From assembly GCF_963506605.1 (NCBI RefSeq), contig NC_083290.1:36146001-36210000 (forward strand): DNA of 64,000 bases. Direction: 5' to 3'. This document shows positions 280 through 59,241 of the stretch, piece by piece. Source of the stretch: Zootoca vivipara. Its lineage: Eukaryota. Made by a program: the position numbers and the translations under genes. Numbering within the stretch: position 1 is the first letter of the stretch; each line of letters starts with the position of its first letter. The notes under the pieces were generated by a model. That model ran no database searches. It was given only the letters and a program-made list of their open reading frames with translations, and was not told where the DNA came from.

Positions 280-3200
280 CTCGATGTAGATAGCTGCCGC
301 TACTTGTGGCATTCCGGCAAACTCCTGGTCCTCGAGAGCAGCGGTGATGTTTTCTACCATGGGAGGGATCCACCAGTGTCGCTTTCCGACAGCTCTGAAA
401 TGAAGAACCAGATCTGGGTAAGGAAGGGAAATACACTGCAGGAAGCAAACAGGGGCACAGTCCGATCCCGTGCCATAAACTCCGTTTGCCAGACCATTGG
501 GGAAGGTCACTGTGTTCTTCCTCTTACCTCACCATGGCAGCCAACCCCTGGCTGAAATTCTCCCGGCAGAAAAGTTGGTCAACAATGGCCGCCTCTACTT
601 GTTCTCCAGTGGTGCCGAGAAGGAGGTGCAGAACTTCCTTAGCCCCTCTGTAACCAAAGCAAGGCCAGTTTTATCAGGAGGGTCATTGCCAACCACTCAA
701 ATTCCTTCCCCATCCTTGCTCCCTAGCAGCAGCCTGAAAGAGAGCCTCCCTTGGAAAACCAAGCTGGACTGGCAACCCCCCCCCCCCCGAGGTTGAAGGG
801 AAAAGGACTCCATTGGCCCCTTTGCAACACACTACTCACCCGAGGAATTCCTGGTCATAATGGAAGTTGACAACCATCCCCAGGAGAGCGATCAGCAGCT
901 GCGGGAAGTTCCGGCGCACAGCTGCCTTATATACCTCCATCCTGAGGATGGTGTGCAACAAGCTGGTGAGATGTTGCTGGAAGAGAGAGAGGTGCAAGTT
1001 ACTTTCCCTGCTTTTCTGCAGAATACAGAAACCCCTTGATATTACCCTGGGAAGAAGGAAGCCAGAAAGCAGGTGGTTCGTCCTTACCACTTGGGTGGCA
1101 GATTCTGCCAAGGGGCTTTGGTAAAGCTGCTCGGCCATGAGATGGAGCAGTTGTTCTTGGTCGGCCGATGCCAAAACCTCCTTCCATACTCTCTCGCAGT
1201 CTCTGTGAATGCAAAAACAAGATCAATGGTCAGATTCAAGTCTTCTCCTTGCTGCCATGCCACACAGAGAGGAAATGGCAGCAAGGGCCATTTCTGAGCA
1301 AGCTCTGCATCTTGCCAACCTTTCCCTTAGCACAGTAGAACCTGGAGGGCTCCATACCTGAAGGGAAACTGGAGGAGGTATGCAACCACTTTCGCCAGGT
1401 GTTGGTGTGGCATGATGGACAGAGCAAAGGCGGCCATGTTTCTGCCCTGCACTGTAGGCCCCTGGGTGATCTTATAGAAGGCCTCCAGCAGCACCTCCAC
1501 CTGTCAGAGAAAAGGAGAGGGTTGCTGGGAGAGTACAAGGAAGCGGGGCTGTCTGCAGGCGGATCCCTCCATCTCTCATAGAAAGAGGGGCCCTTGACCT
1601 GTGCCACCACAGCCATCTTCCTTCAAAGGTACCACTCAGGGTCCTTGGGAGTTTTGGACCAAGGCAGCTCCAGGGCGCCAGTTGCCCTATCCATTCTTGG
1701 CCAAGAGAAGAAGCTTGCCAGTCTGCTCCCAGGTGGAGGAGGATTCCCCATTGCTGGACCCATGTTTCTCAGGACCCTTGGCTGAGGTTCTTGTCCTGAC
1801 ATTGCCAGGCCTCTCTAAACAAACATGTGTCCTGGCCACCCAATGGCATGAGGTTGCCTCCCCTACAGCAAAGTGGAGAATCTTCTTCTCTCCTACCTTT
1901 GCAGACACCTTACCTCCACTTTTGTGCCGCTAAACTGCTTGATGAACTCTTGCAGCAAGTGGGAGATGTCCAAGGGGTTGAAGCTGCTCTCGACAACCAG
2001 GTCACTGGCCAGGAAGCACATGGCCTCCAAGAGCTGCTGCGCAGGAAGATAGGCACCAAAGACCTGAATGAAGCAAGAGAGGAAGGTCAGAGCTGCCCAC
2101 AGGGCAGGGCTGGGGAGCATAAAGCCCAGGTGCTGTCTCTGCGGAACCCAGAACATGTGGCTTGAGAGACCGCTCTGCCTTGTGTGACAGTGACTTACCC
2201 TGGCAAGAGAGTAACAATCATTCACGAACAATTCAGGAACCGGTCCTCTGGTGGATTGGAGGACCTTCTGAGCTCGAAGGATGAGGGTTTGGTCCCACGA
2301 TGTTCGTGCCAGTGTCTCTGCAAAGGAAAGCCAAAGGGTTAGTTCGGGCCTTGCTCATCCCACCCCATGCTGGAATGCATTCCTTCCAGTATTACCTTCT
2401 TTGCGCTGCAGGATGGGCAGAAGATGGCAGAGGGCCTCTGCTGCCTGCTGCCTGCACTCCGGGTCTGGATCCAAAGCACACAGACAGGAAATAGCCACCA
2501 GTTGGCCAAGGGAGGATGCAGGAAGCGCTACCGATGGCTGAGAAGAGACCCAGAGAAGTGACTGATAAGAGAAGAGACCCATCACCATTTTCCCTATAAC
2601 ATTTTTATTAAATCTTCAAAACATTCCAAAACATTTAGCATCCTATACAGGGGTGTGTGTGTGTGAATAATTTCTTTTTGACTTCCCACCCCTCTTTTCC
2701 TGATGTTTGCTTTTTACTTCTTCTTACTCACTGGGGTTTGCTGTACTATGGCCCAGCTCTTTTCTCAAAATTGGTTATGTGCTGTGATGCCTGATTGTCC
2801 CTTGGGCCCCTTGCAGGGTGGGCCTGGAAGGGGCAGCCTGAAGGCCTTGTCAGCCCTGCATGGTTGCAATGCTTTCCTTCAGTAACTCACATATTCCTGG
2901 ATCTTCTGCAGGAGGGCGGAAAGATCTTGGAGCGCCTTCCTTCGGATCTTCCCACTCTTCATCCTGGTGACGACATCCATAAGCCTGGCCTTCAGCTGGT
3001 CCTTTCTGAAGCCGTCGGGAGGAGGATCAGCCGTGCCCAGAGAACCTGTGGTTGAGATGCTGAGGGGAGAGAGGAGGAGCACTTTTGTAAAAAGGTTTTA
3101 TTGCCTCCCATCCTTCAAAGACCCCAAGCACCACCACCATAGAAATGGACCGGGGTGGTGGTGATGGCTTTTGGAAGCAATTGATTACAATGTTTCCCCC

Positions 3201-6200
3201 TTTTAAAGACACTGTCTTATAACATTTTTTCCTCAAAAAAACACAGGGTGGCTTACTTTTGGTGGGGTGTCTTTTTTTATTTTATTACCGGCACGGTTTT
3301 TACAGCTCAGGGCGCTGGCTCAGGGCGCTGCTGGGCTCTCTTGAGTGTTTGGCGCTGCAGCAGCCGCCAGTTCCAGGTGGCGGAGCAGCAGGCGTCCTTG
3401 GCCGGGCCAGGCAAGGAAGAAGCAGTGAGCCCAGCGGTGGTGGCAAGCACGGAAGCGGCAGGAACGACGGTGGATGAGAAGGTGGAGTGCGGGGATGCAG
3501 CCAGCAAGGCGGGAGCGTGATCAGCTGTTAAGCGGCGCTCTTGGAGCGCCGCTTCACAGCTGATCGCGCTCCTGCAGTGCCGGCCGCATGGAGTGACTAT
3601 GTGAGGTGGAGGTGCCTGTGGGGGTTGGCTTATTTTCAGGGTATGTCTTGTATTTCTCAAATACTTAAAAACCCTGCCATGGCTTACTTTATGACTACGT
3701 ATTAAAAAAAGGGGAAACAGGGTACTGTGGGGCGGGGGGGGGCGGTTCGCATAGCATTACCTTGCATAAAGATCCTCCTCATCTTCCAGGCTGATTACTG
3801 ATATTTCATCCTCGTCAAAATCAATTCCCTGTCCATGAGAAAAGAGAAACAGGAACGTCAGAATGTGAAGAATGGATCAGACCCATTCATGTTTTTGTGT
3901 TGACCAGGAAAGCGCAGACGAGGTCGGTTGGGAAACAAACTGAAAATCTCTGTTCCCCATTTCCTTAGAGACCTTATTAATCCATTCATTTAGAGGATTT
4001 GTACCCCTCTCTTAGGGACGCGGGTGGCGCTGTGGTCTAAACCACAGAGCCTAGGGCTTGCCGATCAGAAGGTTGGCGGTTCGAATCCCCACGATGGGGT
4101 GCGCTCCCGTTGCTCGGTCCCTGCTCCTGCCAACCTAGCAGTTCGAAAGCACGTCAAAGTGCAAGTAGATAAACAGGTACCGCTGTGGCGGGAAGGTAAA
4201 CAGTGTTTCCATACGCTGCTCTGGTTTGCCAGAAGCGGCTTAGTCATGCTGTAGCAGGGGCCCAAAGGGCCCCAATTAAGGTGATAATGTAAATCCCTAT
4301 AAATTCTAGAACATGCTTATAATAGTGAATTTTGGGAACTTGTTGCTTTAAGAAACTGATGATCTAGCAAGATGCCGTTCTTTTACCAGAACAGAAGGTC
4401 AGCTAACACGCAAATCACAAAGAAGCAATTCATAAACTAGAACACAAATTGTTATATAGTACACGTAACACAGGTTCCCAACACGCATACTATCTCACAA
4501 TGTAACATCTTATTGAGAATCAAAGGCCTAGCTAGCAATCCTTGGCCTAGTTAGCAATGCTTATTGTGCATGTGTATTAGATTAGGTAATGACATACGTA
4601 TTAAATATGAAATGAGACAATGATGAATATCATAGCTGCCAAGTTATCCCTTTTTTTCAGGGATTTCCCATTATGCTGAATAGGCTTCCTCGCGAGAAAA
4701 GGGGAAACTTGGCAGCTATGTGAATATTAAAATATTAAATGATGTAATGCTTTATGTGATTGGTTAAATCAAAATCCTTTGTCTGAAATGTTATAAATTC
4801 CTGCCCGACCTTTGGGCGGGGTTGCAGTATTCCAAAAAGATTCGACTGTAACCTTATTGCTTTGCAATAAACAAAATGGACTCCTAACTCCTCTTGTCTC
4901 TTGAGTTTTATTGGCTAACTCAGAAGATAAGCCATTTTTGGCTTACAACAATGCTTGCCACATGACCCAGAAACTGTATGCTGGCTCCCTCGACCAGTAA
5001 AGCGAGATAAGCGCCGCAACCCCAGAGTCAGGGGTCCCTTTACCTTGTCCCTCTTTTAAGGCAAAAAGGCTCCAAGGGAGCCTTCCATGATATCAAATGC
5101 AAGAAACTGCACTCCCTAATGGTGGTTTCTTTTAAACAATCTGATCAACAAAAACTCAGAGACAAGAGGAGTTAGGAGTCCATTTTGTTTATTGCAAAGC
5201 AATAAGGTTACAGTCAAATCCTGTGTGAGTGCTTGGGGGCGGTTGGAGGATGGATGGCGGCTAACAGATTGAGATTGAATCCTGACAAGACAGAAGTACT
5301 GTTTGTGGGGGACAGGAGGCGGGCGGGTGTGGAGGACTCCCTGGTCCTGAATGGGGTAACTGTGCCCCTGAAAGACCAGGTGCGCAGCCTGGGAGTCATC
5401 TTAGACTCACAGCTGTCCATGGAGGCACAGGTCAACTCTGTGTCCAAGACAGCTGTTTATCAGCTCCATCTGGTACGCAGGCTGAGTCCCTACCTGCCCA
5501 CTGACTGTCTCTCCAGAGTGGTGCATGCTCTAGTTATCTCTCGCTTGGACTACTGCAATGCGCTCTACGTGGGGCTACCTTTGAAGGTGACCCGGAAACT
5601 ACAACTAATCCAGAATGTGGCAGCTAGACTGGTGACTGGGAGCGGCCGCCGAGACCACATAACACCGGTCCTGAAAGACCTACATTGGCTCCCAGTACGT
5701 TTCCGAGCACAATTCAAAGTGTTGGTGTTGACATTTAAAGCCCTAAACGGCCTCGGTGCGGTATACCTGAAGGAGCGTCTCCACCCCCATCATTCTGCCC
5801 GGACACTGAGGTCCAGCACCGAGGGCCTTCTGGCGGTTCCCTCACTACGAGAAGCCAAGTTACAGGGAACCAGGCAGAGGACCTTCTCGGTAGTGGCACC
5901 CACCCTGTGGAATGCCCTCCCACTAGAGGTCAAAGAGAACAACAATTACCAGACCTTTAGAAGGCATCTCAAGGCAGCCCTGTTTAGGGAAGCTTTTAAT
6001 GTTTGATGGATTTCTGTATTTTAGAATTTCTGTTTTGTTGGAAGCCGCCCAGAGTGGCTGGGGGAACCCGGCCAGATGGGCGGGGTATAAATAATAAATT
6101 ATTATTATTATTATCAACAGAAATACAACACACAAGGAAAGGGGGCAAGGAAGGCAGAGGAAAAGACAACTCACAAGCTCAGGCCTCAGTGTCTAGAATG

Positions 6201-6845
6201 TTGTCATCTCTCCCACTGAGGCAGCCTGATGAAATGGCTGCCGCCAGATGACAGTTGGGGGAGAGGAGGCCTGAGGGAGCTGGCCTGTCTCAGCAGAGCC
6301 CATGGCACTGTTTCTCATCCGTCCTTCCTCCAGGAGCAGAGCTCCGCCAGGCCTCCTGTCTCTCCCTCGCCTGCACCTGGGAGCAGCCCTTTCCTGCAAT
6401 GGACTCTGTGGACAGGTGGGTAGCAGGGCTCCCTGCCTCAGCTCTGCAGAAAAACCAGCTCCATCCGGCACCCCATTCCCCTCCACTTGGCCAGCCACTC
6501 ATGCTTTCTTTTCTTCTTCTGTTTTTCCCTTTCCCTTCCAAATTATAGTACAACATAACATCCAGCATGTAGAAATATAAATGACGCCTCTCCCAGATTC
6601 ACATGAACATAAACCAGAAGGAATCCTCTGTACAAAATAATATTCAATCGACTGTAATATAGGACACTGAATTTTCCTTTTCAGCATTCCTTCTCCCCTT
6701 CCAAAAACCTGGGCAAAGCTCAACCCTTTCTTTGATTTTGGATAGCTCTTTGCCAAACTTGGTGATACTATTAATATAGGTTCTAGAGTTAAGTCCACTG
6801 GCCATGGCAACCTCCACTTACCTCCAGGGGTCGTGGGGACGCCAT
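280..6845 (-). CDS. MROH (maestro HEAT-like repeat) family-like gene, copy A, coding exons 1-11; the 3' part lies left of the window
   Basis: GT-AG exons that join in frame: 6845-6822, 3828-3761, 3059-2891, 2537-2396, 2317-2199, 2063-1914, 1500-1358, 1202-1088, 976-840, 647-528, 394-280. Start AAGATGG is in strong Kozak context (MASPRPLE). MROH-like motifs include LGQLVAISCLCALDPDPECRQQAAEAL and NFPQLLIALL. Confidence 0.85.
3188..3722. mobile_element. Non-autonomous Tc1/mariner-superfamily (Tc2-like) DNA element in intron 2
   Basis: Imperfect TIRs TA|CAATGTTTCCCC ... GGGGAAACAGGG|TA. Absent from copy B (~21481). Confidence 0.75.
4250..4950 (+). mobile_element. Solo LTR (ERV-like) inside the Sauria SINE
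   Basis: TG...CA ends, 4-bp TSD ATGC (4246-4249 and 4951-4954), TATAAA near 4792, AATAAA near 4866. Absent in copy B. Confidence 0.8.
4631..4720. mobile_element. 90-bp hAT-like MITE inside the solo LTR
   Basis: TIR CATAGCTGCCAAGT...ACTTGGCAGCTATG; TGAATAT duplicated on both sides. Empty site in copy C (~45755). Confidence 0.85.
5221..6112 (+). mobile_element. 5'-truncated L2 LINE (ORF2 C-terminal 257 aa at 5233-6006, 3'UTR, (TTA)n tail), copy A only
   Basis: WMAANRLRLNPDKTE, SRLDYCNALY and HITPVLKDLHWLPV are L2 ORF2 motifs. ATCAACA flanks both ends of the insert. Empty site at ~46165. Confidence 0.93.
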
Positions 6846-7659
6846 CTTCTAATGTAGTGACTGAGCGAAGGTCACTACTGGCCACCTCTGCAAACCTCGA
6901 GATGCTGAAGATGCAGGACTGTTCAAACGGTCACAAGTTCCGTTGCTAGGCAGCGGCCCTTGAGAACATGGAATTCCCGGCCTCAGTGCCAATGTTCTAG
7001 GAGAGTCCATGTGGCCTAGTGGTTAGAGCAATGTGAATGCCATGCAACTCAAGGGTGATATATATATTCTTCGAAATGTACAGTTTAATACTTTTTATTA
7101 TTATTTTAATCCTGCTTTGCAGACTCTTGTTGTCTTGTAAAGCAGCTGACATTGATTTAAAAGAAGGTGAGACAAGTCCTGTTCTCAGGTTTAGAAACTC
7201 CAAAGACACCCAATGGAAGGGATGTGGAGGAACAAGGCAGAGGAAGAGCCCCTTTCCCAGGGCCCAAGGAGAGGCCTGAGATGGCCCCAGGCAAGTCCTG
7301 TCCTGCTGGTGCCACGCTGACCTTCTCCACCCCCAGCTCTTCTTGGACAGAGAGTCAGCCACTGACCCTGTAGGGCTTCATGCCCAACTTCAAGGGGGCT
7401 GTGGGGCTCAAGCCCCTCTCAGATTCCCCTGCGGGGCTTATGTGGGCCCCACAGACAGTGCCTGGCAAATGCGCAGGCTCACTTGAGTTGCAACTATGTT
7501 ATCCTACAGGTTCCAGGATGGGGTGGGTGGGTGTTTTGGGAGAATAGGTAGCCTGGCTCCAAGGGCCCATTGCCCTCACAAAGGGCCCTGAGCCCTGAGG
7601 GAAGAGAGGTGAGTTTCAGCAAGACCCAAGGCAGCCATTCAGCCTCTAGGCTTTTTTGA

Positions 7660-7722
7660 GGCGTCCGGAGGAGACTGGCGAAACAGGGCTTATATACACT
7701 TCCGCCCGCCCCCTGGCGACAC
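7660..7722 (-). promoter_or_regulatory. Putative core promoter of MROH copy A (GC box, ETS, TATA)
   Basis: Minus strand reads GGGGGCGGGCGGAAGTGTATATAAG, ~850 bp upstream of the ATG, and is conserved in copies A, B and C. Confidence 0.55.
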
Positions 7723-8932
7723 TTTTCCTTAGAATGTCCCTCGTTTGTTTGGGAAAATGGCCTGAAAGGTATGCAATTACAATGGTACCTCAATCCATTC
7801 CGGAAGTCCGTTCCAAAACCAAAGTGTTTCCAAACCAAGCTGCGCTTTCCCGTAGAAAGTAATGTGAAATGGATTAATCCATTTTAGACTTTTAAAAACA
7901 ACGCCTGAAACAGTTATTTAACATGAATAGACCATTGATCCATAAAATGAAAGCAATAAACATTGTACTGCAGTCACACAGATTCCCCTGGGGGGCTTAC
8001 ATGGGCCCCACAGGCAGCAGGCAGTCCCTGGCAAATGCTCCCCACCTGCTGAATTTCTGCCTGCCAGAATAGTAGTAAATGTAGAAATCAATCCAAAATA
8101 GAAGGAATAAAGAAAAGGGGGAAGAGATAACAAGAAATTCTGCTTCTCTTCCTCATGGAGCTTTAATGGCCAGGGAATGGCAAATGGTGGTAATTTATTA
8201 TTTTTTTTGCCTCCATTCATGGAGGCCACTTCAGTGACAGAAACCTCAAGGTAAGAAGGCCTCCTTTGCAGCCTCCACACCATCCATTCTAGAGGTGGAA
8301 AGGAGCCAAGAGACCCCTTAGACCCCAACTGAGAGGCCGAGGGAGATGGAGCTTTGCAAGCAGAGCCTTCTGCTTCAGGAAAAGTCTGGCTGCTTCTCTG
8401 GGAGCCATTGGCAGCAGCTCTGCCCACCCCAGAAGAGCCTGCTGGCTGATGAGCTCTATTGGCTAGCCTGGAGCGTCAATCAGCCAGCTAGGGAGGGAGG
8501 GCTCAACTTGCGAGGTGCCTAGCCAGGTAGGCTGCACAAGACAAGCAGGTTAGGGTGAGGGAAAAACTTTTACATTTTATTTCTTGTGACTTCAAGAAAG
8601 TGACCAAAGGCATCCCAAAGGGAGCAGGGGGCTCTGTGCGCCCGAAAGGGAACCTATCCGTCTTTGGAAGGCCAGGTGGCCACCCCAGCTGGGGCTTTGC
8701 TCCTGGATGAGTCCTTTCTGACTCCCAGGACTGTCCTGATGGTCAGGGAGCCTCTCTCAGCCGGCTCCGCCAGCCAGGCCTTGGGCAGCCCCTGATTCCC
8801 AAGGAGGACCTCCGGGCTCCCTGGCCCTTCTTGTTCTCCATCCTCGGCCACCTGAGCCTTGGGACCTCAGCTGGAGACACCCAGGACTTGGCAGAGCCTC
8901 CCTCTGTCTCTGCACAGCTTCTTCCTGTGGCG

Positions 8933-9245
8933 CTGACTCTCCAAGTGTCCCTCTTTCCCAGGGACTGTCCAGGATTTACAAAAGCCGTCTCAGTTCCTGA
9001 TTTGACTCCAGAATGTCCCACTTTTCCTTAGGACGTCCCTATTTTCATCAGAGAAATGTTGGAGGGTATGGAATTATGGGACCCCTGAGCCAAGGAGCAA
9101 AGTAACTATACAGCCTTTACAAGACGTGGGAAGGCAGCCCTGTATAGGGAAGTTGTTTAGTGTTTAATGTTTTATTATGTTTTTATATATGTTGAAAGCA
9201 GCCCAGAGTGGCCTGGGGCAACCCAGTCAGATGGGCGGAGTATAA

Positions 9246-9295
<50 letters not shown>

Positions 9296-9335
9296 GGACG
9301 TCCGTATTTCCAAAAGTAAAATGTTGGAGGGTATG
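8933..9335. mobile_element. Composite non-autonomous DNA element (hAT-like) containing an L2 3' tail and (AAT)n
   Basis: The ...AATGTTGGAGGGTATG terminus occurs twice (to 9070 and to 9335) around an L2 3' end homologous to ~5950-6100. Paralogues at ~26255-26650 and ~49843-50251. Confidence 0.55.
9248..9295 (+). repeat. (AAT)n microsatellite
   Basis: Direct observation. Length differs in copy B (26568-26610), and copy C has a mixed (AAT)/(AAC)n tract (50155-50211). Confidence 0.95.
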
Positions 9336-9876
9336 CAATCAGCCGAGATGGAAACACACAAGGGAGAGTAGTGTTTGTGTGGGAGGAGGAGGAGGAGGAG
9401 GAAGAGGCATGAAGGCATATTTGGGCCCTTTCTTGGAGTACTGGCCCAACTTGTTGGTGTGCAAATGTGGAGCCCTATGTTATAGGAAAAACCTGCTCCT
9501 TTTCCTCTATGGGGTATCCAAGAGCCCGTATAGAGTCCTTAAGTGGGTTCTCTATTGTTAGGAGAAAATAACCGAGGCAAACCAGAGTATATTGAGAAGC
9601 AAAGCAGCTAGTAAGCCTGATCTTTATTCAACAGTTGCAACAGGGTCCTCACTCACCACATGCAGGGAGGAGGAACCCAGAACAATGGTGTGCAAGCCCT
9701 TCTAGAGACTTTTGAAATTGCCCACCTTGTAGCTCAGTAAGATCCCTTTTAAAAAGAAGAGACACGAGAATCTGATTAAACTTAATGTAAAAGTAGTTTA
9801 TTCACAGATTAATTCAGGTTCACTGATAGATCCCTGAAGGCAGGCTTAGGTTACATAACTATATACAGTATATATA

Positions 9877-10109
9877 CATAGAATCATAGAGTTGGAAGAG
9901 ACCACAAGGGCCATCCAGTCCAACCCCCTGCCGAGCAGGAAACACCACCAAAGCATTCTTGACATATGCCTGTCAAGCCTCTGCTTAAAGACCTCCAAAG
10001 AAGGAGACTCCACCACACTTCTTGGCAGCAAATTCTACTGTCGAACAGCTCTTACTGTCAGGAAGTTCTTCCTAATGTTTAGGTGGAATCTTCTTTCTTG
10101 TAGTTTGAA
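9877..10109 (-). mobile_element. CR1 LINE 3' fragment
   Basis: (ATTCTATG) tail on the minus strand; WNLLPRSVVESPSLEVFKQRLD-type ORF2 C-terminus. Paralogues at ~27166-27398 and ~50800-51031. Confidence 0.9.
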
Positions 10110-10196
10110 CTGTTATGACATGACAGTTGACATGAACTGTCCCATAAGGGAATTAGTCCCAAGTGACTCCGACTGAGCAGTCACTTCTCCTAACAC

Positions 10197-10646
10197 CATA
10201 GCTGCCAAGTTCGGATCGTAAAGATCCGGGATCGGCAGCACGCGCATGACCGGAAGTTGCGTGACGCAACTTCCGGTGGCGCTTCGCCCTTCTATGGGCA
10301 CCAGAAAATGGCGGCGCCAGCGCCGGAAGTCGCTTCCGCGCATGACCGGAAACACGTAAAAGTGACTTCCGACGCCGGCGCCGCCATTTTCTGATGCCCA
10401 TAGAAGGGCAAACCGCAACCGGAAGTCGCGTCACGCAACTTCCGGTCATGCGCGGATGCGACTTCCGGCGCCGGCGCCGCCATTTTCTGATGCCCATAGA
10501 AGGGCAAAGCGGCACCAGAAAAATGGCCGCCGGGAAGAAGCAAATTAAAGGGACAATGCCGGGATTTTCTGCCAAACGGGAGACCGCCGGGAAAGGGTAA
10601 GAAAAAAGGGGTTTTCCTGGCGGATACGGGATACTTGGCAGCTATG
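10197..10646. mobile_element. GC-rich palindromic hAT-type MITE
   Basis: TIR CATAGCTGCCAAGT/ACTTGGCAGCTATG, 8-bp TSD CCTAACAC; empty site in copy B at ~27478. Confidence 0.92.
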
Positions 10647-11109
10647 CCTAACACACAGGAATGCAAAATGGAGAAGAAGAAAAACAGAACAACATGGGGG
10701 AACGCTTGTTCCTCTGCCCAGAATAGGCCACACCCACATCAAGTCACATGCAGTGGAAGTCTGTCCCAGCTCAGGAGGAAACAGGAGGTTTTCTCTTGAG
10801 TGGTACAAAACATCCCCTAACATGTCCACTGTAGGAATGTTGTACATGACTGCTATAAGTTTCACATCCCACAAAGACCACCCCCAAAACATCATACATA
10901 CTGTACCTCACAGAAGGAATCCAGTTTGCCAGGATATCTGTCACTGATTGCTTTACATTTATATTCTTTTGTGATGGTAAATTCCTTAATACCTGATTGC
11001 TTTACATGGGTAGCCTTTTTTAAATATATATTTCAAGGCTTTTATATGTTATTTTCTCTCTTATGGTTTTATCTGCAAAATGCCTAATAAAGGTTTGATA
11101 AGTAGTAAA

Positions 11110-11555
11110 ATAAACTTATTTATTTTTTGCAAGTATTTACAAAAAGTTGCCATAAACAAACCAAAAATATAATAGTAAATAATAATAAAAAATTATCACA
11201 ACCTAACAAAAAATACAATAAATAATAAATCTTTGCTTAATCAAAAAGCAATTTACATGATCTCACCAACCACCCCCTCCACCCACCTTTTTTTGTTTTC
11301 CAGCCAGTCTTATATTGCGCCTTTTTACTCTTCCTTTACTCACATGTATACCTATATCCTCACTGTCCCTTTTAATATTCATTGGTTTGGGCCTTCATAG
11401 ATCTGTTCTCGACAAAGCTTGCTATATAATCTTTCAATTTCCCCCCATCTTTATCCTTTTCTCATTTATTCCTTTAATCTCTGCTGTTTTTGTTGCCAAA
11501 TTATAATATGATATCATTTTTACTTGCCCATCCTCTTTGCTTGGTAGCAGCTTCT
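11110..11555 (-). mobile_element. Degenerate L1-like LINE 3' end
   Basis: Minus strand reads LPSKEDGQVKMISYYNLATKTAEI...KDYI, resembling the squamate L1 ORF2 terminus, followed by a T-rich 3'UTR and AATAAA. Confidence 0.55.
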
Positions 11556-11747
11556 GTGAGTGAAGTGAAGGGCTGTTTCTCAGAAGAGGAAACCCTGGGA
11601 GAGACTAGGGTTCAAATACCTCCTTACTCAGCTATGAAGCCAACTGGGTGAGCTGGGACCAGGTTGTAGGGATTAAATGAGAAGGCGAGAACTATGTATG
11701 TCATCTTGAGCTTCTTGGAGAAAAAGATGGGATATAAATTCAGACAG

Positions 11748-12240: not shown

Positions 12241-12244
12241 AGAA

Positions 12245-13469: not shown

Positions 13470-13521
<52 letters not shown>

Positions 13522-26566: not shown

Positions 26567-26610
<44 letters not shown>

Positions 26611-33900: not shown

Positions 33901-33959
33901 GTCCAGACTGGATACCGTGGAGAGCAGAAGATGGTATCTCTGCAGCACAACTCTGATGT

Positions 33960-47719: not shown

Positions 47720-47830
47720 GAGGCGTCCGGAGGAGACTGGTGAAACAGGGCTTATATACACTTCCGCCCGCCCCCTTGCGACACCCACCTAGGGCAGGAT
47801 TGGCTGCTTTGCACTCAGCAGTCAATCACA
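47720..47830 (-). promoter_or_regulatory. Putative core promoter of MROH copy C
   Basis: TATA at 47751-47759 with GC/ETS motifs; one CCAAT intact, the other changed to GTCAATC. Confidence 0.55.
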
Positions 47831-48737
47831 ATGCAGGGTTCAGAAGCCTGTCCTGTCTTGTGATGCGGACTCAGCTGAGAGCAGGAGACACCAAGGAGCA
47901 GATAGAACCCCTGACACCCCCCCTTTTCCTGGGAGCAACCAACTGCAAGGCCTCTGCATTGCCCCACAGAGGAGGGCCAAGGTCTGAAGGCGGCTGGATG
48001 GCCCAGTCAAGGGCCTCCCTGATAGGAAATAGAAATACGGTCTCCAGCTTTCCTAGGAGTGACACACTGCAAGGCTTCCGCTGGGCCTACGATGGCCACC
48101 TTTGGCAGACCCTCCAGGTGTCCTTATTTTCCAGGGCCGTCTCTGATTTAGCAGAGCCGTCCCAGTTTCTGATTTGATCCTGGAATGTTCCACTTTCCTT
48201 AGAATGTCCCTCGTTTGTTTGGGAAAATGGCCTGGAAGTTATGGAATTACAATGATACCTTAATTCTCAGACTCAATCCATTCCGGAAGTCCGTTCCAAA
48301 AGCAAAGCGTTTCCAAACCAAGCTGCGCTTTCCCATAGAAAGTAATGCAACATGGATTAATCCATTTTAGACTTTTAAAAACAACGCCTGAAACAGTTAT
48401 TTAACATGAATAGACCATTGATCCATAAAATGAAAACAATAAACATTGTACTGCAGTCACACAGATTCCCCTGGGGGGCTTACATGGGCCCCACAGGCAG
48501 CAGACAGTCCCTGGCAAATGCTCCCCACCTGCTGAATTTCTGCCTGCCAGAATAGTAGTAAATGTAGAAATCAATCCAAAATAGAAGGAATAAAGAAAAG
48601 GGGGAAGAGATAACAAGAAATTCTTCTTCTCTTCCTCATGGAGCTTTGCCTCCAACACCCTAACGGTGTTCACATAACCCCTCATCCCCCTGAGAGTTCC
48701 AATATAGAAAGGTTATGGTGCTTTAATGGCCAGGGAA

Positions 48738-49083
48738 CATACCTGCCAAGTCCCTGCCTGAGAAATAAGGGACTGGACTAGAAGTAGCAGACCGGAAGTA
48801 GCGCTGCCGCCATTTTGGAACTGGGCGGAGCATGCTCAGAAGCGACTTTTGCTGCTGCTCTGCCCTTTTCCAAAATGGCCACCGCGCCAGAAGTCGCGCT
48901 GCAGTCATTTTGGAACTGGGCAGAGCAGCAGCAAAAGTCGCTTCTGAGCATGCTCCGCCCAGTTCCAAAATGGCCGCCGCGCGAGAATGAACCGGGAAAA
49001 AACAAAAAAAATCCTTTTTTCCGGCTGGGAACAGGTGGAAAAACGGGGGTTTCCCGGGGAATACGGGAGACTTGGCAGCTATG
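48738..49083. mobile_element. Same hAT-type MITE upstream of the copy C promoter
   Basis: CATACCTGCCAAGT...ACTTGGCAGCTATG; TSD CCAGGGAA/CTAGGGAA. Confidence 0.88.
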
Positions 49084-50165
49084 CTAGGGAATGGCAAATG
49101 GAGGTTATTTATTAATTTTTTTGCCTCCATTCATGCAGGCCATTTCAGTGACAGAAACCTCAAGGTCAGAAGGCCTCCTTTGCAGCCTCCACGCCATCCA
49201 TTCTAGAGGTGGAAAGGAGCCAAGACCCTTAGACCCCCACCAAGAGGCCGAGGGAAATGGAGCTTTGCAAGCAGAGGCTTCTGCTTCAGGAAAAGTCTGG
49301 CTGCTTCTCTGGGAGCCATTGGCAGCAGCTCTGCCCACTCCAGAAGAGCCTGCTGGCTGATGAGCTCTATTGGCTAGCCTGGAGCGTCAATCAGCCAGCT
49401 AAGGAGGGAGGGCTCAACTTGTGAGCTGTCTAGCCAGGTAGGGTGCACAAGACAAGCAGGTTAGGGTGAGGGAAAAACTTTTACATTTTTTTTTATTATG
49501 ACTTCAAGAACGTGACCAAAGGCGTCCCAAAGGGAACAGGGGACTCTGTGCACCCGAAAGGGAACCAATCCGTCTTTGGAAGGCCAGGTGGCCACCCCAG
49601 CTGGGGCTTTGCTCCTGGATGATGCCCTTCTGACTCCCAGGACTGTCCTGATGGTCAGGGAGCCTCTCTCAGCCGGCTCCGCCAGCCAGGCCTTGGGCAG
49701 CCCCTGATTCCCAAGGAGGACCTCTGGGCTCCCTGGCCCTTCTGGTTCTCCATCCTCGGCCACCTGGGCCTTGGGACCTCAGCTGGAGACACCCAGGACT
49801 TGGCAGAGCCTCCCTCCGTCTCTGCACAGCTTCTTCCTGTGGCGCTGACTCTCCAAGTGTCCCTCTTTCTGTCCAGGATTTACAGAAGCCATCCTGGTTC
49901 CTGATTTGACTCCAGAATGTCCCACTTTTCCTTAGGACGTCCCTATTTTCATCAGAGAAATGTTGGAGGGTATGGAATTATGGGACCCCTGAGCCAAGGA
50001 GTGAAGTAAGTATACAGCCTTTACAAGACATGGGAAGGCAGCCCTGTATAGGGAAGTTGTTTAGTGTTTAATGTTTTATTATGTTTTTATATATGTTGAA
50101 AGCAGTCCAGAGTGGCCTGGGGCAACCCAGTCAGATGGGCGGAGTATAAATAGTATAATAATAAT

Positions 50166-50201
<36 letters not shown>

Positions 50202-51118
50202 AACAACAACAGGATGTCCGTATTTCCAAAAGCAAAATGTTGGAGGGTATGCAATCAGCCGAGATGGAAACACACAAGGGAGAGTAGTGTTTGTGTGGGA
50301 GGAGGAGGAGGAGGAGGAGGAGGAAGAGGCATGAAGGCATATTTGGGCCCTTTCTTGGAGTACTGGCCCAACTTGTTGGTATGCAAATGTGGAGCCCTAT
50401 GTTATAGGAAAAACCTGCTCCTTTTCCTCTATGGGGTATCCAAGAGCCCGTATAGAGTCCTTAAGTGGGTTCTCTATTGTTAGGAGAAAATAACCGAGGC
50501 AAACCAGAGTATATTGAGAAGCAAAGCAGCTAGTAAGCCTGATCTTTATTCAACAGTTGCAACAGGGTCCTCACTCCCCACATGCAGGGAGGAGGAACCC
50601 AGAACAATGGTGTGCAAGCCCTTCTAGAGACTTTTGAAATTGTCCACCTTGTAGCTCAGTAAGAACCCTTTTAAAAAGAAGAGACATGAGAATCTGATTA
50701 AATTTAATGTAAAAGTAGTTTATTCACAGATTAATTCAGGTTCACTGATAGATCCCTGAAGGCAGGCTTAGGTTACATAACTATATACAGTATATATATA
50801 TAGAATCATAGAGTTGGAAGAGACCACAAGGGCCATCCAGTCCAACCCCCTGCCGAGCAGGAAACACCATCAAAGCATTCTTGACATATGCCTGTCAAGC
50901 CTCTGCTTAAAGACCTCCAAAGAAGGAGACTCCACCACACTTCTTGGCAGCAAATTCTACTGTCAAACAGCTCTTACTGTCAGGAAGTTCTTCCTAATGT
51001 TTAGGCGGAATCTTCTTTCTTGTAGTTTGAACTGTTATGACATGACAGTTGACATGAACTGTCCCATAAGGGAATTAGTCCCAAGTGACTCCGACTGAGC
51101 AGTCACTTCTCCTAACAC

Positions 51119-51568
51119 CATAGCTGCCAAGTTCGGATCGTAAAGATCCGGGATCGGCAGCGCGCGCATGACCGGAAGTTGCGTGACGCAACTTCCGGTG
51201 GCGCTTTGCCCTTCTATGGGCACCAGAAAATGGCGGCGCCAGCGCCGGAAGTCGCTTCCGCGCATGACCTGAAACACGTAAAAGTGACTTCCGACGCCGG
51301 CGCCGCCATTTTCTGATGCCCATAGAAGGGCAAACCGCAACCGGAAGTCGTGTCACGCAACTTCCGGTCATGCGCGGATGCGACTTCCGGCGCCGCCGCC
51401 GCCATTTTCTGGTGCCCATAGAAGGGCAAAGCGGCACCAGAAAAATGGCCGCCGGGAAGAAGCAAATTAAAGGGACAATGCCGGTATTTTCTGCCAAACG
51501 GGAGACCGCCGGGAAAGGGTAAGAAAAAAGGGGTTTTCCTGGCGGATACGGGATACTTGGCAGCTATG
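51119..51568. mobile_element. Same hAT-type MITE in the third period
   Basis: Same TIRs and TSD CCTAACAC. Confidence 0.92.
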
Positions 51569-53164
51569 CCTAACACACAGGAATGCAAAATGGAGAAGAA
51601 GAAAAACAGAACAACATGGGGGAACGCTTGTTCCTCTGCCCAGAATAGGCCACACCCACATCAAGTCACATGCAGTGGAAGTCTGTCCCAGCTCAGGAGG
51701 AAACAGGAGGTTTTCTCTTGAGTGGTACAAAACATCCCCTAACATGTCCACTGTAGGAATGTTGTACATGACTGCTATAAGTTTCACATCCCACAAAGAC
51801 CACCCCCAAAACATCATACATACTGTACCTCACAGAAGGAATCCAGTTTGCCAGGATATCTGTCACTGATTGCTTTACATTTATATTCTTTTGTGATGGT
51901 AAATTCCTTAATACCTGATTGCTTTACATGGGTAGCCTTTTTTAAATATATATTTCAAGGCTTTTATATGTTATTTTCTCTCTTATGGTTTTATCTGCAA
52001 AATGCCTAATAAAGGTTTGATAAGTAGTAAAATAAACTTATTTATTTTTTGCAAGTATTTACAAAAAGTTGCCATAAACAAACCAAAAATATAATAGTAA
52101 ATAATAATAAAAAATTATCACAACCTAACAAAAAATACAATAAATAATAAATCTTTGCTTAATCAAAAAGCAATTTACATGATCTCACCAACCACCCCCT
52201 CCACCCACCTTTTTTTGTTTCCCAGCCAGTCTTATAATGCGCCTTTTTACTCTTCCTTTACTCACATGTATACCTATATCCTCACTGTCCCTTTTAATAT
52301 TCATTGGTTTGGGCCTTCATAGATCTGTTCTCGACAAAGCTTGCTATATAATCTTTCAATTTCCCCCCCATCTTTATCCTTTTCTCATTTATTCCTTTAA
52401 TCTCTGCTGTTTTTGTTGCCAAATTATAATATGATATCATTTTTACTTGCCCATCCTCTTTGCTTGGTAGCAGCTTCTGTGAGTGAAGTGAAGGGCTGTT
52501 TCTCAGAAGAGGAAACCCTGGGAGAGACTAGGGTTCAAATACCTCCTTACTCAGCTATGAAGCCAACTGGGTGAGCTGGGACCAGGTTGTAGGGATTAAA
52601 TGAGAAGGCGAGAACTATGTATGTCATCTTGAGCTTCTTGGAGAAAAAGATGGGATATAAATTCAGACAGTCTTGTTTTTGCTGACTGTATAGAGCTTCT
52701 CCATCTTTGGCTGCAGAGAATATAATCAATCTGATTTCGATGCTGCCCATCTGGTGATGTCCATGTGTAGAGTCATCTCTCGTGTTGTTGGAAAGAGTGT
52801 TTGTGATGAACCGCTTGTTCTCTTGACAGAACTCTATTAGCCTTTGCCCTGCTTCGTTTTGAACTCCAAGGCCAAACTTGCCAGTTGTTCCGTTTATCTC
52901 TTGACTCCCTGCTTTAGCATTCCAATCCCCTATAATGAGAAGAGCATCCTTCTTTGGTGTCATTTCTAGAAGGTGTTGTAAGTCTTCATAGAATTGGTCA
53001 ATTTCAGTTTCTTCAACACTGGTAGTTGGTGCATAAACTTGGATTACTGCGATGTATCGAGATCATTCTATCATTTTTGAGATTGCATCCCGGTACAGCT
53101 TTTACCTCCCTTTTGTTGACTATGAGAAGGCCACTCCATTTCTTCTATGGGAGTCTTGCCCACA

Positions 53165-54880
53165 GAATCAGGGGATGGCTTGAACTGTTACAGTCACCCC
53201 TATCAGAATTGACTTGGAATCTGGAGTGTTGGTAGGCTGCAGGAGCCCTGCATTCTGAAGCTCTAAGTTAAGAACAGAACCGGAACCTTTTATATTGACA
53301 GTTATAGCCTGTCGATGGCTTAAAGAAGGATCCTCATCCTTTAATTCTCCCAAATGAGAGGTGTTAAAACCAAGTAAAAAGAGAGAAGCTATAAAGTCTT
53401 GAGGGAGAAGGCTCTGGTTTACCAAAAGCAAGTGGCATTTTAGGGCATATTGTGCAGCAAGGAACTTGTTTGCCACCTTTGACATGCCCAACCTGAGTTC
53501 TCAAAGGTCCTGAGAACATTCTTAGGACTTTGCTGGATTTGGCAAGAATTGGATACCAGAAATGAGGGGAGAAGCAACACATCACAACACATTAACCAAA
53601 AAGGGTTCCTGGATTGAATATGGACTATAGAAATGAGAAAAGGCTTTGAAGAGTCTTTGAAGACATCCCTAGCTGAACCACCAGCGCTGGCATTGCCCAG
53701 TCCCTTTAAATCCTGTAGACCGTATGTGAATGAAGTGAAGGCTGTGGGATCGGGAGTGTTGATACAGAGAGGAGAACCCCATTGGAGGACAGTGGAGAAT
53801 CTTGATTCTGTGGCCCAATGATGGCCAATATGCAGCAGCAGCATTTGTCCTCCCTGTGCAGGAGGCTCAGAAGGTGACTATCGGAGCTGATGTTGGAGAT
53901 TATATTTTGCATGGAGTGCCTCAGATTCTCAGCACCAAAGGAAAGCTTCTTCATCCTACTTTCCAGTTCAAGTATGAGGTTTCCCTCCTGACTAACCCAA
54001 ATCTGACTTTGAAAGCGTTAACTCCTTGAACCCAGCTACCTTGTGTCAGTTCCTGTTTCGGATCCAGGAGAACCCCACGATCATCTGTTTGCTATGAATC
54101 AGAAAGTTGTTATCAGGATGTTCCTTTTAGAGATGCAGATGAAGACATGTTTGTGGATGAACCCAGCTTCATGGCCGAAGGAAGGAGATATTCAAGATAT
54201 GCTGTGGTTACGGCAAAGGGAATCATTACACAAGAAGGACTGCTCTCTCATTTTTCAGCACAAGAGGTTGAACTGATGGAATTGACTAGGACTCTCCATA
54301 TCTATAAAGATTCTACTTATGCTTTTGGAACAGTGCAAGCCCAGGGCCTTTTGTGAAAGGAGAGAAGTTTCATTACTGCAGATGGACATCAAGTAGTAGT
54401 AGTAGTAGTAGTAGTAATAATAATAATAATTTATTATTTATACCCCGCCCATCTGGCCGGGTCTCCCCAGCCACTCTGGGCGGCTTACAACAGAAAAATA
54501 AAACACAATAATCTATTAAACATTAAAAGCCTCCCTGAACAGATCTCAACTACTTGCTCTCCTAGATGCCCTCTTGTTCCCTGTGATGCGTGTCGGATCC
54601 ATGGAAGAGCAACAGACCCAAGCTAGGAGAAGAAATACGATGGATGAGAAACCTCTAAGGAAGTGGCAAGAATGCTATCTTATGGGTAACGTGCAACATT
54701 TTCACCAAGGACTAACCCCAACCACAGCATACTGAAGAAAGCATGATTTGAATTCAATAATAAAGAACCTTGAAGCCAAATCTGGGTGATGGACTTTTGA
54801 TGGTAAATCTTGAAGGAATTTCATCAACAAGGAAGGACACATGAATGCAGTGAGAGAATTGGGAGAATTAGTTTCTAGAA
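53165..54880 (+). mobile_element. Decayed ERV pol remnant (third period)
   Basis: Paralogue of 12245-13960 (ORFs 53633-53821, 54147-54356). Confidence 0.8.
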
Positions 54881-57161
54881 TAGGCACGTTACTTTTGAAC
54901 ACTGAAGCCACAACACATGAGAAGATGTGAGTCCAGGAGTGAAATATATATATATATTGAGTAAGATGCCATTTTCTATTGTATTCCTCAAGATCTTATA
55001 AGTTATGTTAGTTTGTTGCTTTGCTAAACAGCTTTCATTAGGCATGTGTTGAATGCAGTTGTTTTTGTTATGTAGGAGGGTGAAGATACTCTTTTAGAAA
55101 GGAAGCTCTTAAAAGTCTTGAGGGAGTTCTGCCTCTAAGAAGTCTGACGCCCTTTCCTTCAGGGACCAGGAGTGAATCTGGAACATGTATCCCAGGGAAG
55201 AACAGCATCGATTTAGGCAACAGTTTGTAGGCTCCATTGTTCTTCCCCCACCGCAGCCGCAGTCTTCCTTTCCCAACGGGATTTCCCCCCCCCCTTCTTC
55301 ACAGGAGCCTCCTCCCAGCACACCCTCCAAATCTGCCTTCCCATAGGCAGCCTTGGATTCAGCCCTTGGATTCCAGCAGGGGCTGTGAAGTGCTGAAGGG
55401 ACAGCAAGACCAGATTTTCTATGAGTTCTATGAGTTTTTCATGAGTTCTCATAGCCTGGATCTTGTCTCTGCCACTGGAGGTTGCAGGTGAGATGTATTT
55501 GGAGAGAACTGATAAGGAAGTGGGGCAGGATGGTGAAAAGGGACGGTTGTGAACATCCCCACCTCTGAGCGGCAGACAACTCCAGGGGTTCCTGCGCTTA
55601 GCCTGGGTTCAGTTTCCTTGGAATGAAGACTGGGCTGTCTTTGGGATATTAGGCTTTGCTTGCCCATAGATGCTAGGATGGGTCCAGCTCAGAGCAAGAC
55701 AATCTCCTGCCTCTCCAGATTCCAGCATCCTCCCATCTCACCAGATACAATCCCTGCCACCAGCCTCTATGTCTCCATCTTACGAGCTGACTTTTCACAA
55801 ACCAAAAAACTCACTTCTCTTTTTAACAAAAATATTATTTATTCATTTTTTACAAAGTGAATTTTTTACACATTTTAACATAAACCATAAGATCCATATT
55901 TATCATTTAAAAATATTTTTAATAAAAGAATTAGAATTACAAAGACATAAAGTGATACAAAGGGGGAAGTGAGGAGGAAAAGGACAAAGATGCTTATAAA
56001 AAAGAAGGAACAAAAATAATAGGCTCCCTATTTTGCCTATACTATTCTATACATCCATTCTAACCTATCTATCTTCCTAAAAAAAGTCCTGCTTGCTGTT
56101 TTACGTCCTGAAAGAGTCAATAAAAAGTGTCCAATCCACAAATTCACTTCCAGGTGGAGGGTCGATGTTGCTCATGTCGTCTTCAGGGCGGCTCCTTTCC
56201 CAGCTGATGACATTCTTGCGGGGGTCTTCTTTTCTCCGGACGTCTCCTCCCAGGCTCCAGCAGATAGACCGCCATTTCCCATCGTGGATTTGTTGCATGC
56301 AGGAAAAAGAGAAGAGAGATTCTGTTAGAAAGGGTACTAAATCTCATGAATATCAGACCCTCTTGTTGCTGCCCCCCCCCCAACAATAATGAATAAACAA
56401 AGAATTGGAAGTAAGTTGCTGCTGGGGGGTTGCCTGCCCCGCCCCCCACTCGAGAGGATGAAAGAGTCCTGCAAGGAACCGGACCCTGGGCTTACAACAG
56501 CGACTGGGGGAGCTCCATAGAGCCTGCCTGTCCTGGGGGCGGGACCCCCAACAAAGGGCAAACAATAAAGGAAAAGTTGTCCCTTTGGGGGCAACACTTA
56601 GGGGGCGAGACCAGATTGTGGGCCAGCCCCCTTGTGATTACATTACTGTTTTAACAAGGATGGGGCTTTAAATTGGGTGGGTGCTGTTTGATTTGCAGGG
56701 TGGGGTTGTTTTAAATGGTTGTTAAATGTGATATGTTGATTTAGATTTTGGATTTGTGGGCTGGGGTGTTGTTTTGGGGCTTTTGTATTAGTCTTGTGGC
56801 TATTTTTATTACGTCTTTATTATTTTAATTTATGTTATGTTCTGATATTTTTATTATGATTTTTGCACACCTATTATTCTTATTATGGATTTTGTGCTTT
56901 GTATGCTGGAACTTGGTGTTGTGAACCATACTGAGATTCAAAATCAATCAGTGAAATAAACCCTCAACAATCAAAAACGACATCAACAAGAAACACAACA
57001 ACAACAAAAAGATTTCCTACCGCTATGTATTGGGGGGGGGGGTCGTGAGGGCAGCACCACTCCTCTTGGTCAATCCTGGTGGCGTTGATGTTCCTGGCGC
57101 TGGTCCAGACTGGATACCGTGGAGAGCAGAAGATGGTATCTCTGCAGCACAACTCTGATGT

Positions 57162-59241
57162 TCATGTTCCCTTGGCCTGGCGCGACTGCGGATGTTCTGT
57201 CAGGAGGAGAAAGGGGTCTTTTTTTTTAGAAACATCACCTCCAAATAGCCCACCAGACATCCAAATAGACCACCAGATGCCTCACTCACCTGGCATGCAG
57301 CTCAGGAAGTCCCGTGGGTAAGGTTCCCTGTGAACACAATGGAGCAGCCTCCTCACAAGGCGCTGGACCCTGCCTTTCTGCCGATGTTTACAGGCCCGCT
57401 GCATGATGTTCAGGCAGCTCCTCCCTGTCCGCCTGAGCCCTTCTTCCTCGTGCTGCTGCATCTCTTCCAGCCCTGAGTGGCAAGAGAGAAAGGTTGAGCA
57501 AGGAATCAGCTTTTCACAAGGCAAAAACTTCCAAAGCACCCCCACCAGAACCTGCCTTCACCTAAAGCCCTTTCTCAGCAGAAGCATCCCTCCCTGCTCT
57601 CTGTACGTCTCACTTACATGTGCCGTAGGATGCCATGTCTTGACTGTGTATGAAACTGGCATCCCGGAAAGCCAGATGACCTAGCGAGACAGGGCAAGAA
57701 AAGGGACGTCATCGGCAGCTCGGCAGGAGGACAGGTATGCTAGAGCCTCCACCCTTGCGGAGCACTCAGAGCAAGATCTGGGCGCAGATGGAGCCCTACC
57801 TAGCAGGTGGCCTGGGGACATGCCCATCCTCACTGGCATCATTAGCAAGACGTTTCTGTCCATCCCTACCAGGGAAGGACGTTGTTTGACTTACCCAGAA
57901 GCAGAGCTGCCACCCTGGAGACTGCTGGCAGCCTGTTGGCAGACGGCTTCATACATGTCAAGGCAGCACTCCGAAGGATGTTCTTGCTGAAAGTCTTGCT
58001 CTGTCGGCAAAGACAAAGGCGAAGGGGCATCAGAGAGGCTTGAGAGCGCGGCAGAAGAATCCGTAACCCCCAAAGACATCCCTGGGCAAATCTGCCAATG
58101 AAGCAGAGTGACCTTACCAGATGCTTGGCAGCCTGGTGGAGAGCAAAGTGGAGGCTAAATTTGTTGGGATGTGCCCACCACTTCACTTGTGGGGCTAGAT
58201 GGGAAAGAGCCCTCCTTGCGGCCTGCAATACAAGAAGAGAAGATCCTTACAAATTGCAGTACATAGTCTTGGAAGCTCTTGAGAACAATCCCTCCCTCCT
58301 ACTGCATAAGTCCACCTGCTTGGCCCTCACCTTGGCCACCTCGTCCTCGTCTTCGAGGTGAAGGAGGACGACGACCAGTTCATTAATGGCTTCTTCTTCT
58401 TCTGTTGTTGTTGTTATGGGAAGCCTTTGGTCTCTCGCCCAGCCCCGAAGCAGCCCCAGATGTTGGATGGCTGATGCCCGGACGGAGGCTTCCTCCTGTA
58501 GGCAGAAAAGATCAGAGGTTGTGTTTCTCATCAGATCACTTTCCTTTCTCCTGTCCACCAAGGTGTTTTGAGGCTGCTCAGCCCCCTATCCTCCTCCGGG
58601 GGCAGACTGGGGGCAGGGGGGACTCTCCCCCTGTGTTTTCCAGGCAGGCTTCCAAGAGAAGGTGCTCCAGTGGAACACCTTCCTGAAGCCAGAACATCTC
58701 TGCTGCATGCCAGTCTAAACACCACCCTTCCTCTTCCAAAGCATTCCTCCTCCACCCTGTGTGATGTCATGTGTTCCCTAATACTCACATGGGCAGCCAG
58801 ACCGCAGTAGGTTGCCGCCAGCATCTTCAGCTCTTCCTCTCCCAGCTCCCTGGAGAGGTAAGCTTGGTGTACCAGCTCTATCAACTCGGGGAAGACATCA
58901 GCTTCTGCATCAGGGAGGAAATCCAGCAGCGACAGCCGCAGAAGCGAAGGGTCCTACACAAAAGAGAGAATCTTTTCAAAGGTCTGAAAGGCCCCACGCT
59001 GTTTCTTTGAGAACAGGCCCTTCAGCATTCTGTCAGCAAAAGAGTGCTGGACCATGATTCGAATCGAAATCTGTGCCCCTCCCCCCTCCCTCTGACCATC
59101 ACTTGCCATGTCAGAGTCCAGAAGCAGGGATATCCCTCTGACACTGAGCTTCCGGACTTGCAGGTGGTCATGTTTCAGCCAGGTGAGGAGCTGCTCCAGT
59201 GTATCCTCACAGGGATAGACCTGCAGACGGCAGCTGAGCAG
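57162..59241 (-). CDS. MROH family-like gene, copy D, coding exons 12-19; the 5' part presumably lies right of the window
   Basis: Apparently identical to copy C exons 12-19 at offset +23202 (exon 12 at 59241-59107; last exon 57196-57162). Confidence 0.83.

Follow-up and report, generated by a model that had tools for sequence, protein, structure and literature searches.

A probable tandem array of short MROH-type HEAT-repeat genes in Zootoca vivipara

The stretch of Zootoca vivipara DNA analysed here comprises 64,000 nucleotides (nt) of NCBI RefSeq assembly GCF_963506605.1 (contig NC_083290.1, positions 36,146,001 to 36,210,000 of the forward strand) and is referred to as the window, with position 1 being its first letter. 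It most probably contains a real tandem array of protein-coding paralogues that constitute a short, fast-evolving member of the MROH family of HEAT-repeat proteins. The genes lie head to tail on the minus strand, with two copies (B and C) complete and two (A and D) cut by the window edges (Table 1). Very little is known of the biology of MROH proteins, a large family in vertebrates, and a short lizard member that is amplified, constrained and turned over quickly represents a natural experiment on the role of the HEAT_Maestro module.

Gene model and copies

The gene in copy B spans roughly 6.6 kb and is divided into 19 small coding exons (E0-E18). A preliminary description of the window had proposed 19 exons splicing in frame to 751 or 752 amino acids (aa), two further partial copies and exons devoid of stops and frameshifts. 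All of this was reproduced: copies B and C yielded the same two lengths, copies A and D ended at 280 and 59241 as proposed, and neither a stop nor a frameshift was found in any exon of copies A-D. The difference between 751 aa (B) and 752 aa (C) results from a 3-nt in-frame indel in the Thr run of E13. Introns follow the GT-AG rule throughout, with strong polypyrimidine tracts in copy B, the exception being intron 11 of copies C and D, whose donor is GC.

The true N-terminus (MASPRPLE) corresponds to the 24-nt first coding exon, which is found in copies A, B and C and has AAG before the ATG and G after it. The true C-terminus (EHPQSRQAKGT) is encoded by the small last coding exon, E18, whose start at 16352 is spliced to the E17 end at 16447. 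The acidic N-terminus and the basic C-terminus of the preliminary description are thus present, but neither forms the end of the protein: the acidic peptide covers residues 9-29, behind the real start, and the basic stretch KHRQKGRVQRLVRRLL lies ~28 residues short of the real end. An earlier 17-exon model of 727-744 aa, which started with an ATG at 21619 and read through to a TGA at 16441, was rejected, because this ATG is replaced by ACG in copies A and C, RNA joins 16447 to 16352, and RefSeq relatives point to the MASPRPLE exon. The in-frame ATG itself (21619-21617) lies in the acceptor region between intron 0 and E1 of copy B, its counterparts being ACG at 3858-3856 in copy A and at 44959-44957 in copy C. 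One Podarcis raffonei RefSeq model begins at the equivalent Met (MFLFLFSHGQ), and this Met may be an alternative start or part of an alternative first exon in some copies.

The 751-aa translation of copy B matches RefSeq protein XP_060124580.1 in full (100% identity), and the part of copy A in the window likewise matches residues 1-434 of XP_060124579.1 (717 aa) at 100%. The same 46.76-Mb chromosome carries a third neighbour, XP_060124578.1, which agrees with copy A at 99.8% of the 428 residues aligned. For copy C, the best database match was again XP_060124580.1 (97.2%). Since copies A and B are identical to RefSeq models, the gene is annotated and, in terms of database records, not part of the undescribed system that had been suggested. 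The array genes are labelled "MROH7" or "uncharacterized" in automatic gene models, where MROH7 is a similarity label that does not imply orthology to MROH7. No paper on the family was found in a literature search for MROH in lizards or for the LOC identifiers of these genes, which are therefore annotated yet unstudied. Relative to copy B, XP_060124579.1 is shorter by ~34-35 residues, which corresponds to E14 in length (35 codons); the window does not reach into the 3' half of copy A.

Table 1. Positions of gene copies and associated elements in the window. Exons are given from high to low coordinates.
Feature	Position	Strand	Description	Exons
Copy A	6845-280	minus	5' part, E0-E10, 434 aa; remainder past left edge of window	E0 6845-6822, E1 3828-3761, E2 3059-2891, E3 2537-2396, E4 2317-2199, E5 2063-1914, E6 1500-1358, E7 1202-1088, E8 976-840, E9 647-528, E10 394-280
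Copy B	22937-16318	minus	Complete, 19 coding exons (E0-E18), 751 aa, without Gypsy insertion	E0 22937-22914 (ATG), E1 21589-21522, E2 21361-21193, E3 20845-20704, E4 20625-20507, E5 20371-20222, E6 19802-19660, E7 19537-19423, E8 19309-19173, E9 18997-18878, E10 18744-18630, E11 18396-18262, E12 18107-17943, E13 17649-17488, E14 17379-17275, E15 17157-17052, E16 16837-16775, E17 16629-16447, E18 16352-16318 (TGA)
Copy C	46894-33960	minus	Complete, 19 exons, 752 aa, Gypsy in intron 10, frame intact	E0 46894-46871, E1 44929-44862, E2 44159-43991, E3 43637-43496, E4 43417-43299, E5 43163-43014, E6 42600-42458, E7 42302-42188, E8 42076-41940, E9 41749-41630, E10 41496-41382, E11 36039-35905 (donor GC, not GT), E12 35751-35587, E13 35293-35129, E14 35020-34916, E15 34798-34693, E16 34478-34416, E17 34270-34088, E18 33994-33960
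Copy D	59241-57162	minus	3' part, E11-E18, 318 aa; 5' part past Gypsy and right edge of window	E11 59241-59107 (GC donor), E12 58953-58789, E13 58495-58331, E14 58222-58118, E15 58000-57895, E16 57680-57618, E17 57472-57290, E18 57196-57162
Broken partial duplicate	30971-29992	minus	Part of E12 to part of E16; 88-99% identity (blastn/tblastn), gaps and indels, stop codon in read-through	
Tandem array	98-59291		Head-to-tail; unit ~16-19 kb, plus ~5 kb where Gypsy is present (self-BLAST)	
Ty3/Gypsy retrotransposon, copy C	36377-41337	plus	Full-length, antisense in intron 10	
Ty3/Gypsy retrotransposon, copy D	59579-64000	plus	Same insertion in intron 10; cut by window end, LTR and flank matches identical	

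At the equivalent positions of the other two spacers, self-BLAST detected no counterpart of the broken E12-E16 fragment, which lies in the B-C spacer. The 11-kb spacer upstream of E0 contained no family matches beyond it. No Pfam domain was recognized in ten of the larger spacer open reading frames (ORFs), and scans of the window with Rfam and for tRNAs (ARAGORN) returned no matches.

Protein family, selective constraint and expression

Whole-protein searches were performed with XP_060124580.1, and exon pieces were searched separately. The Pfam profile HEAT_Maestro (PF21047) matched residues 70-271 with 73.7 bits (E 2.7e-20; cutoff 27.4), covering profile positions 3-205 of 229, and E3 alone still scored 33.2 bits (E 6e-8). 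A second domain, HEAT_MROH2B_C (PF23227), is listed in the precomputed Pfam annotation of XP_060124580.1 and most of its homologues; our own hmmscan with an older Pfam version gave no hit to it at E-values of up to 5. The N-terminal domains HEAT_MROH2B_1st and HEAT_Maestro_2 gave no hmmscan hits in the 751-aa protein. The nearest ESM Atlas clusters were all named MROH and carried PF21047 and PF23227. An AlphaFold2 model was all-alpha, with 35 helices and no sheets. Its predicted local distance difference test (pLDDT) values were 70-90 over residues ~430-720 and below 50 up to about residue 74; residues 1-49 lacked secondary structure. The top Foldseek matches were the HEAT solenoids karyopherin-beta2, SF3B1, PP2A-A and CAND1, with template modelling scores of ~0.2 and 11-14% identity. 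On these grounds, the protein is a short form of the MROH/Maestro-type HEAT-repeat family, as the preliminary description had anticipated for both the domain search and the structure prediction.

Known counterparts include the short MROH clusters (MROH6, ~700 aa; MROH9, ~855 aa; "putative MROH7", 617 aa), which are of the same size class, show the HEAT_Maestro plus HEAT_MROH2B_C layout annotated for the lizard protein (Atlas feature scores 0.96) and, like the lizard protein, are HEAT solenoids of unknown function. The relationship is distant, with no sequence-level match in word searches, and the lizard family differs from these clusters in being tandemly amplified and found here only in Lacertidae and Cordylidae. 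The long MROH proteins (MROH1, MROH2A/2B, MROH5, MROH7 and MROH8; 1,000-1,750 aa) have HEAT_Maestro and a C-terminal HEAT region in common with the lizard protein, which is about half as long and lacks HEAT_MROH2B_1st and HEAT_Maestro_2. The notion that it resembles only the C-terminal part of MROH was therefore broadly correct, but short forms of this kind were already known from MROH6 and MROH9. With the generic HEAT scaffolds (karyopherin-beta2, SF3B1, the PP2A A subunit and CAND1), the protein shares an all-alpha fold of paired-helix repeats, a likeness of fold class only. No relative was detected in a sequence search of the PDB. Word-index searches and a single-exon search of 1.84 billion representatives retrieved only lacertid and cordylid relatives and one Logan fragment, and no canonical MROH.

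The protein is read as comprising four parts: a disordered acidic N-terminal tail, the HEAT_Maestro module (residues ~70-271), additional, probably MROH2B-C-type HEAT repeats and, close to the C-terminus, a basic helix. By analogy to other HEAT solenoids and its MROH relatives, it is probably a non-enzymatic, protein-binding scaffold, albeit on weak grounds, and its charged ends, the acidic N-terminal tail and the basic C-terminal helix, may contribute to partner binding or regulation of the solenoid.

Selective constraint was assessed by comparing copies with each other. Copies B and C differ at 20 synonymous (530 sites) and 20 nonsynonymous positions (1,720 sites), which corresponds to a ratio of nonsynonymous to synonymous divergence (dN/dS) of 0.30 (Fisher p 2e-4); dS was 0.039, near the intron divergence of 0.031. 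Values of 0.23 and 0.36 were obtained for A versus B (E0-E10 only) and B versus D (E11-E18 only), respectively. In the comparison of B and C, the exons showed a single in-frame indel event (3 nt) in 2,259 columns, whereas the introns showed 17 events, including ones of 536, 619 and 5,109 nt. Therefore, the lineages leading to B and to A/C/D have been under purifying selection, and the indel counts agree with the earlier view of intact exons amid indel-rich introns. The divergence between A and C (0.3%) and between C and D (0%) was too small for a test of constraint.

Expression was examined by comparing four RNA sequencing runs with positions 16300-22250 (the region of copy B). Contigs of run X1 contained joints with CT..AC ends that matched introns 5 and 8-17 to the base (11 of the 18 introns), among them the E11 acceptor (18396) and the splice joining E17 to E18. 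Identical joints were seen in a small number of raw reads from runs X15 and X17. Read orientation in X15 and X17 disagreed on the RNA strand, which was assigned from the CT..AC (that is, GT..AG) intron ends. At 30 diagnostic sites, the RNAs mostly matched none of copies A, B, C and D. Therefore, transcription and correct splicing were established for members of the family, not for the copies in the window themselves, so that the check for spliced RNA proposed in the preliminary description confirmed 11 of the exon joints, but with low-level transcripts of other paralogues.

A repeat of ~340 nt in intron 0 of copy B (21780-22120), also present at 45124-45463 and 4023-4251, showed very high RNA depth in all four runs, with a mean word depth of up to 54,503 in X1. 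About 92-95% of the X15-X17 reads continued from it into unlike sequence. The repeat was not recognized by ARAGORN or Rfam, and its behaviour suggests an abundant dispersed element such as a short interspersed nuclear element.

Growth of the array and the Gypsy insertion

Self-BLAST resolved the array into three units (98-18446, 18445-36089 and 41338-59291) and two extra 5-kb blocks (36089-41338 and 59291 to the end of the window), with E0-to-E0 spacings of 16,092 and 23,957 nt. The units are 91-99% identical in a mosaic fashion: the 5' halves of units 1 and 3 (copies A and C) are 99.25% identical, and unit 2 (copy B) is ~3-5% away from both. The segments 32576-40798 and 55779-64000 are 99.915% identical over 8,223 nt, with ~7 differing sites, and the coding sequence and introns of copy D are identical to those of copy C. 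Near-identity of multiple copies, as in ampliconic families, is thus seen for C and D (99.9%) and for A and C (99.3%), and the distance of B (3-5%) indicates a mixture of young and older units.

The extra block in copy C harbours what looks like a very recently inserted Ty3/Gypsy long terminal repeat (LTR) retrotransposon, perhaps from a still-active family. Its LTRs (36377-36752 and 40962-41337) are 376 nt long, 100% identical and bounded by TG..CA ends, and the element is flanked by a 5-bp target duplication (GCCTC). A single intact gag-pol ORF (36881-40951, 1356 aa) encodes, in Pfam order, protease (302-391), reverse transcriptase (500-647), RNase H (710-844) and integrase (951-1111). The insertion is present in copies C and D, and the site is empty in copies A (target at 240/241) and B; therefore, the duplication that separated C and D postdates the insertion. 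We infer that the Gypsy element inserted first and the unit was duplicated thereafter, with ~7 changes in 8.2 kb since then and none in the LTRs. This order of events directly attests to growth of the array until recently, the alternative being an assembly duplication of C and D (see below); the self-BLAST units, the 99.9% identity of C and D and their common Gypsy element agree with the amplifying tandem array put forward in the preliminary description. The array would grow and be homogenized by unequal crossing-over or gene conversion between units of ~18 kb, the latest step being the duplication of C to D after the very young insertion in intron 10. It provides a well-dated example of array growth, in which insertion of a Gypsy element was followed by duplication of the unit.

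The Gypsy LTR contains a 55-nt tandem repeat (2.2-2.5 copies; 36451-36586) with CCAAT-like motifs. Tandem duplications of 95-96 nt (~2 copies, 76-82% matches) are found at matching places in the spacers (10323-10508, 24843-25035, 48795-48987 and 51245-51430) and are probably part of an unidentified repeat element.

Lineage pattern and alternative explanations

Further full or truncated members of the family are recorded in RefSeq for Zootoca, on two more chromosomes (54.85 and 54.49 Mb), and, in several copies, for Podarcis raffonei, P. muralis and P. lilfordi; Hemicordylus capensis has at least eleven loci. The uncharacterized Podarcis and Hemicordylus loci (for instance XP_053257012.1 and XP_053100205.1) are collinear over their full length with the Zootoca genes and likewise multi-copy in each species, with some Hemicordylus isoforms being longer (899-920 aa). 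Maximum-likelihood tree reconstruction placed the copies of each genus in a group of their own (support 94/89 for Zootoca, 93/86 for Podarcis and 100/100 for Hemicordylus), and within Zootoca the array on the 46.76-Mb chromosome was split from the members on the 54.85-Mb and 54.49-Mb chromosomes. This grouping by genus fits lineage-specific amplification and turnover, as claimed in the preliminary description, and concerted evolution would look alike. Zootoca and Podarcis proteins are 82-88% identical, whereas identity between the lacertids and the cordylid Hemicordylus amounts to 41%; such evolution appears fast for a constrained protein. As regards the kind of system, there is nothing new: the genes are in RefSeq, the layout is known from MROH6, MROH9 and the short "putative MROH7" clusters, and lineage-specific tandem expansions are common.

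The host chromosome measures 46,761,448 bp. In another Z. vivipara assembly, autosome 14 has a size of 46.75 Mb, and Z1 and Z2 have sizes of 75.68 Mb and 50.12 Mb, respectively (PMC13560796). The chromosome is thus nearest in size to autosome 14 and unlike Z1 and Z2, a match of size only, which argues against sex linkage and makes the array look autosomal.

Several observations weigh against the reading of the locus as an array of protein-coding paralogues. The RNAs match none of the four copies at most diagnostic sites, the mean pLDDT of the AlphaFold2 model is only moderate (60.9), the 90% clusters examined contained no RefSeq protein identical to copy C, copies C and D may be impaired by the GC donor of intron 11 and the 5-kb antisense Gypsy element in intron 10, the near-identity of C and D could reflect a single unit doubled by the assembler, and the genus-wise grouping in the tree could stem from gene conversion instead of lineage-specific amplification.

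Part of these points would be accommodated if function were confined to a single member or a few of them, for instance copy B, and the others, especially C and D, were young duplicates on their way to becoming pseudogenes that are intact merely through recency. In addition to the GT-to-GC change, the antisense insertion and the missing RefSeq counterpart of copy C, this explanation could draw on the low divergence of A/C and C/D, which is too little for a test of constraint, on the broken E12-E16 fragment in the spacer and on the many truncated family models (228-619 aa) that RefSeq lists on another chromosome. However, splicing is usual for GC-AG introns whose donor is otherwise strong (GCAAGT), antisense LTR elements in introns are commonly tolerated, and the comparison of B with the A/C lineage gives constraint on both halves of the gene. 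We consider incipient pseudogenization of most copies rather unlikely.

Alternatively, the family could represent an ampliconic germline gene caught up in a conflict such as meiotic drive or sperm competition, with copy number as the trait under selection. Mammalian MRO and MROH2B/7 have been linked to gonad or sperm, which would favour such a role by analogy, as would the separate amplification in three lizard genera, the fast protein evolution (identities as given above) and the lack of a CpG island around the first exon. On the other hand, dN/dS values of 0.23-0.36 signify purifying rather than positive selection between copies, the size of the chromosome suggests an autosome, and gene conversion yields the same tree. 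A conflict gene appears quite improbable, as does the germline, immune or conflict role suggested in the preliminary description. The wider proposition that at least three lizard lineages (Zootoca, Podarcis and Hemicordylus) amplified a short, fast-evolving MROH gene independently and repeatedly because germline conflict selects on its copy number is distinctly improbable in our judgement; if true, it would provide a squamate and apparently autosomal counterpart of the mammalian ampliconic genes.

False duplication of a smaller locus by the assembler, whether behind the whole array or at least behind the C/D pair, is highly improbable: even though tandem repeats are prone to mis-assembly and C and D agree at 99.915% over 8.2 kb including the whole Gypsy element, copies A, B and C differ by 0.7-5% and in structure (a 144-nt indel, indels of ~540-620 nt, presence or absence of Gypsy and the fragment at 30 kb), C and D themselves differ at ~7 sites, RNA contigs disclose further distinct paralogues, and independent annotations place many loci on three chromosomes.

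Real protein-coding paralogues thus remain the favoured explanation of the array. A trace of the family was also noted on the 120.5-Mb chromosome of Z. vivipara, where the RefSeq model of insulin receptor substrate 2 isoform X2 contains ~50 residues with 88% identity to the C-terminal part of the MROH-like protein; the probable cause is either exonization of a dispersed piece of the family or a chimeric gene model.

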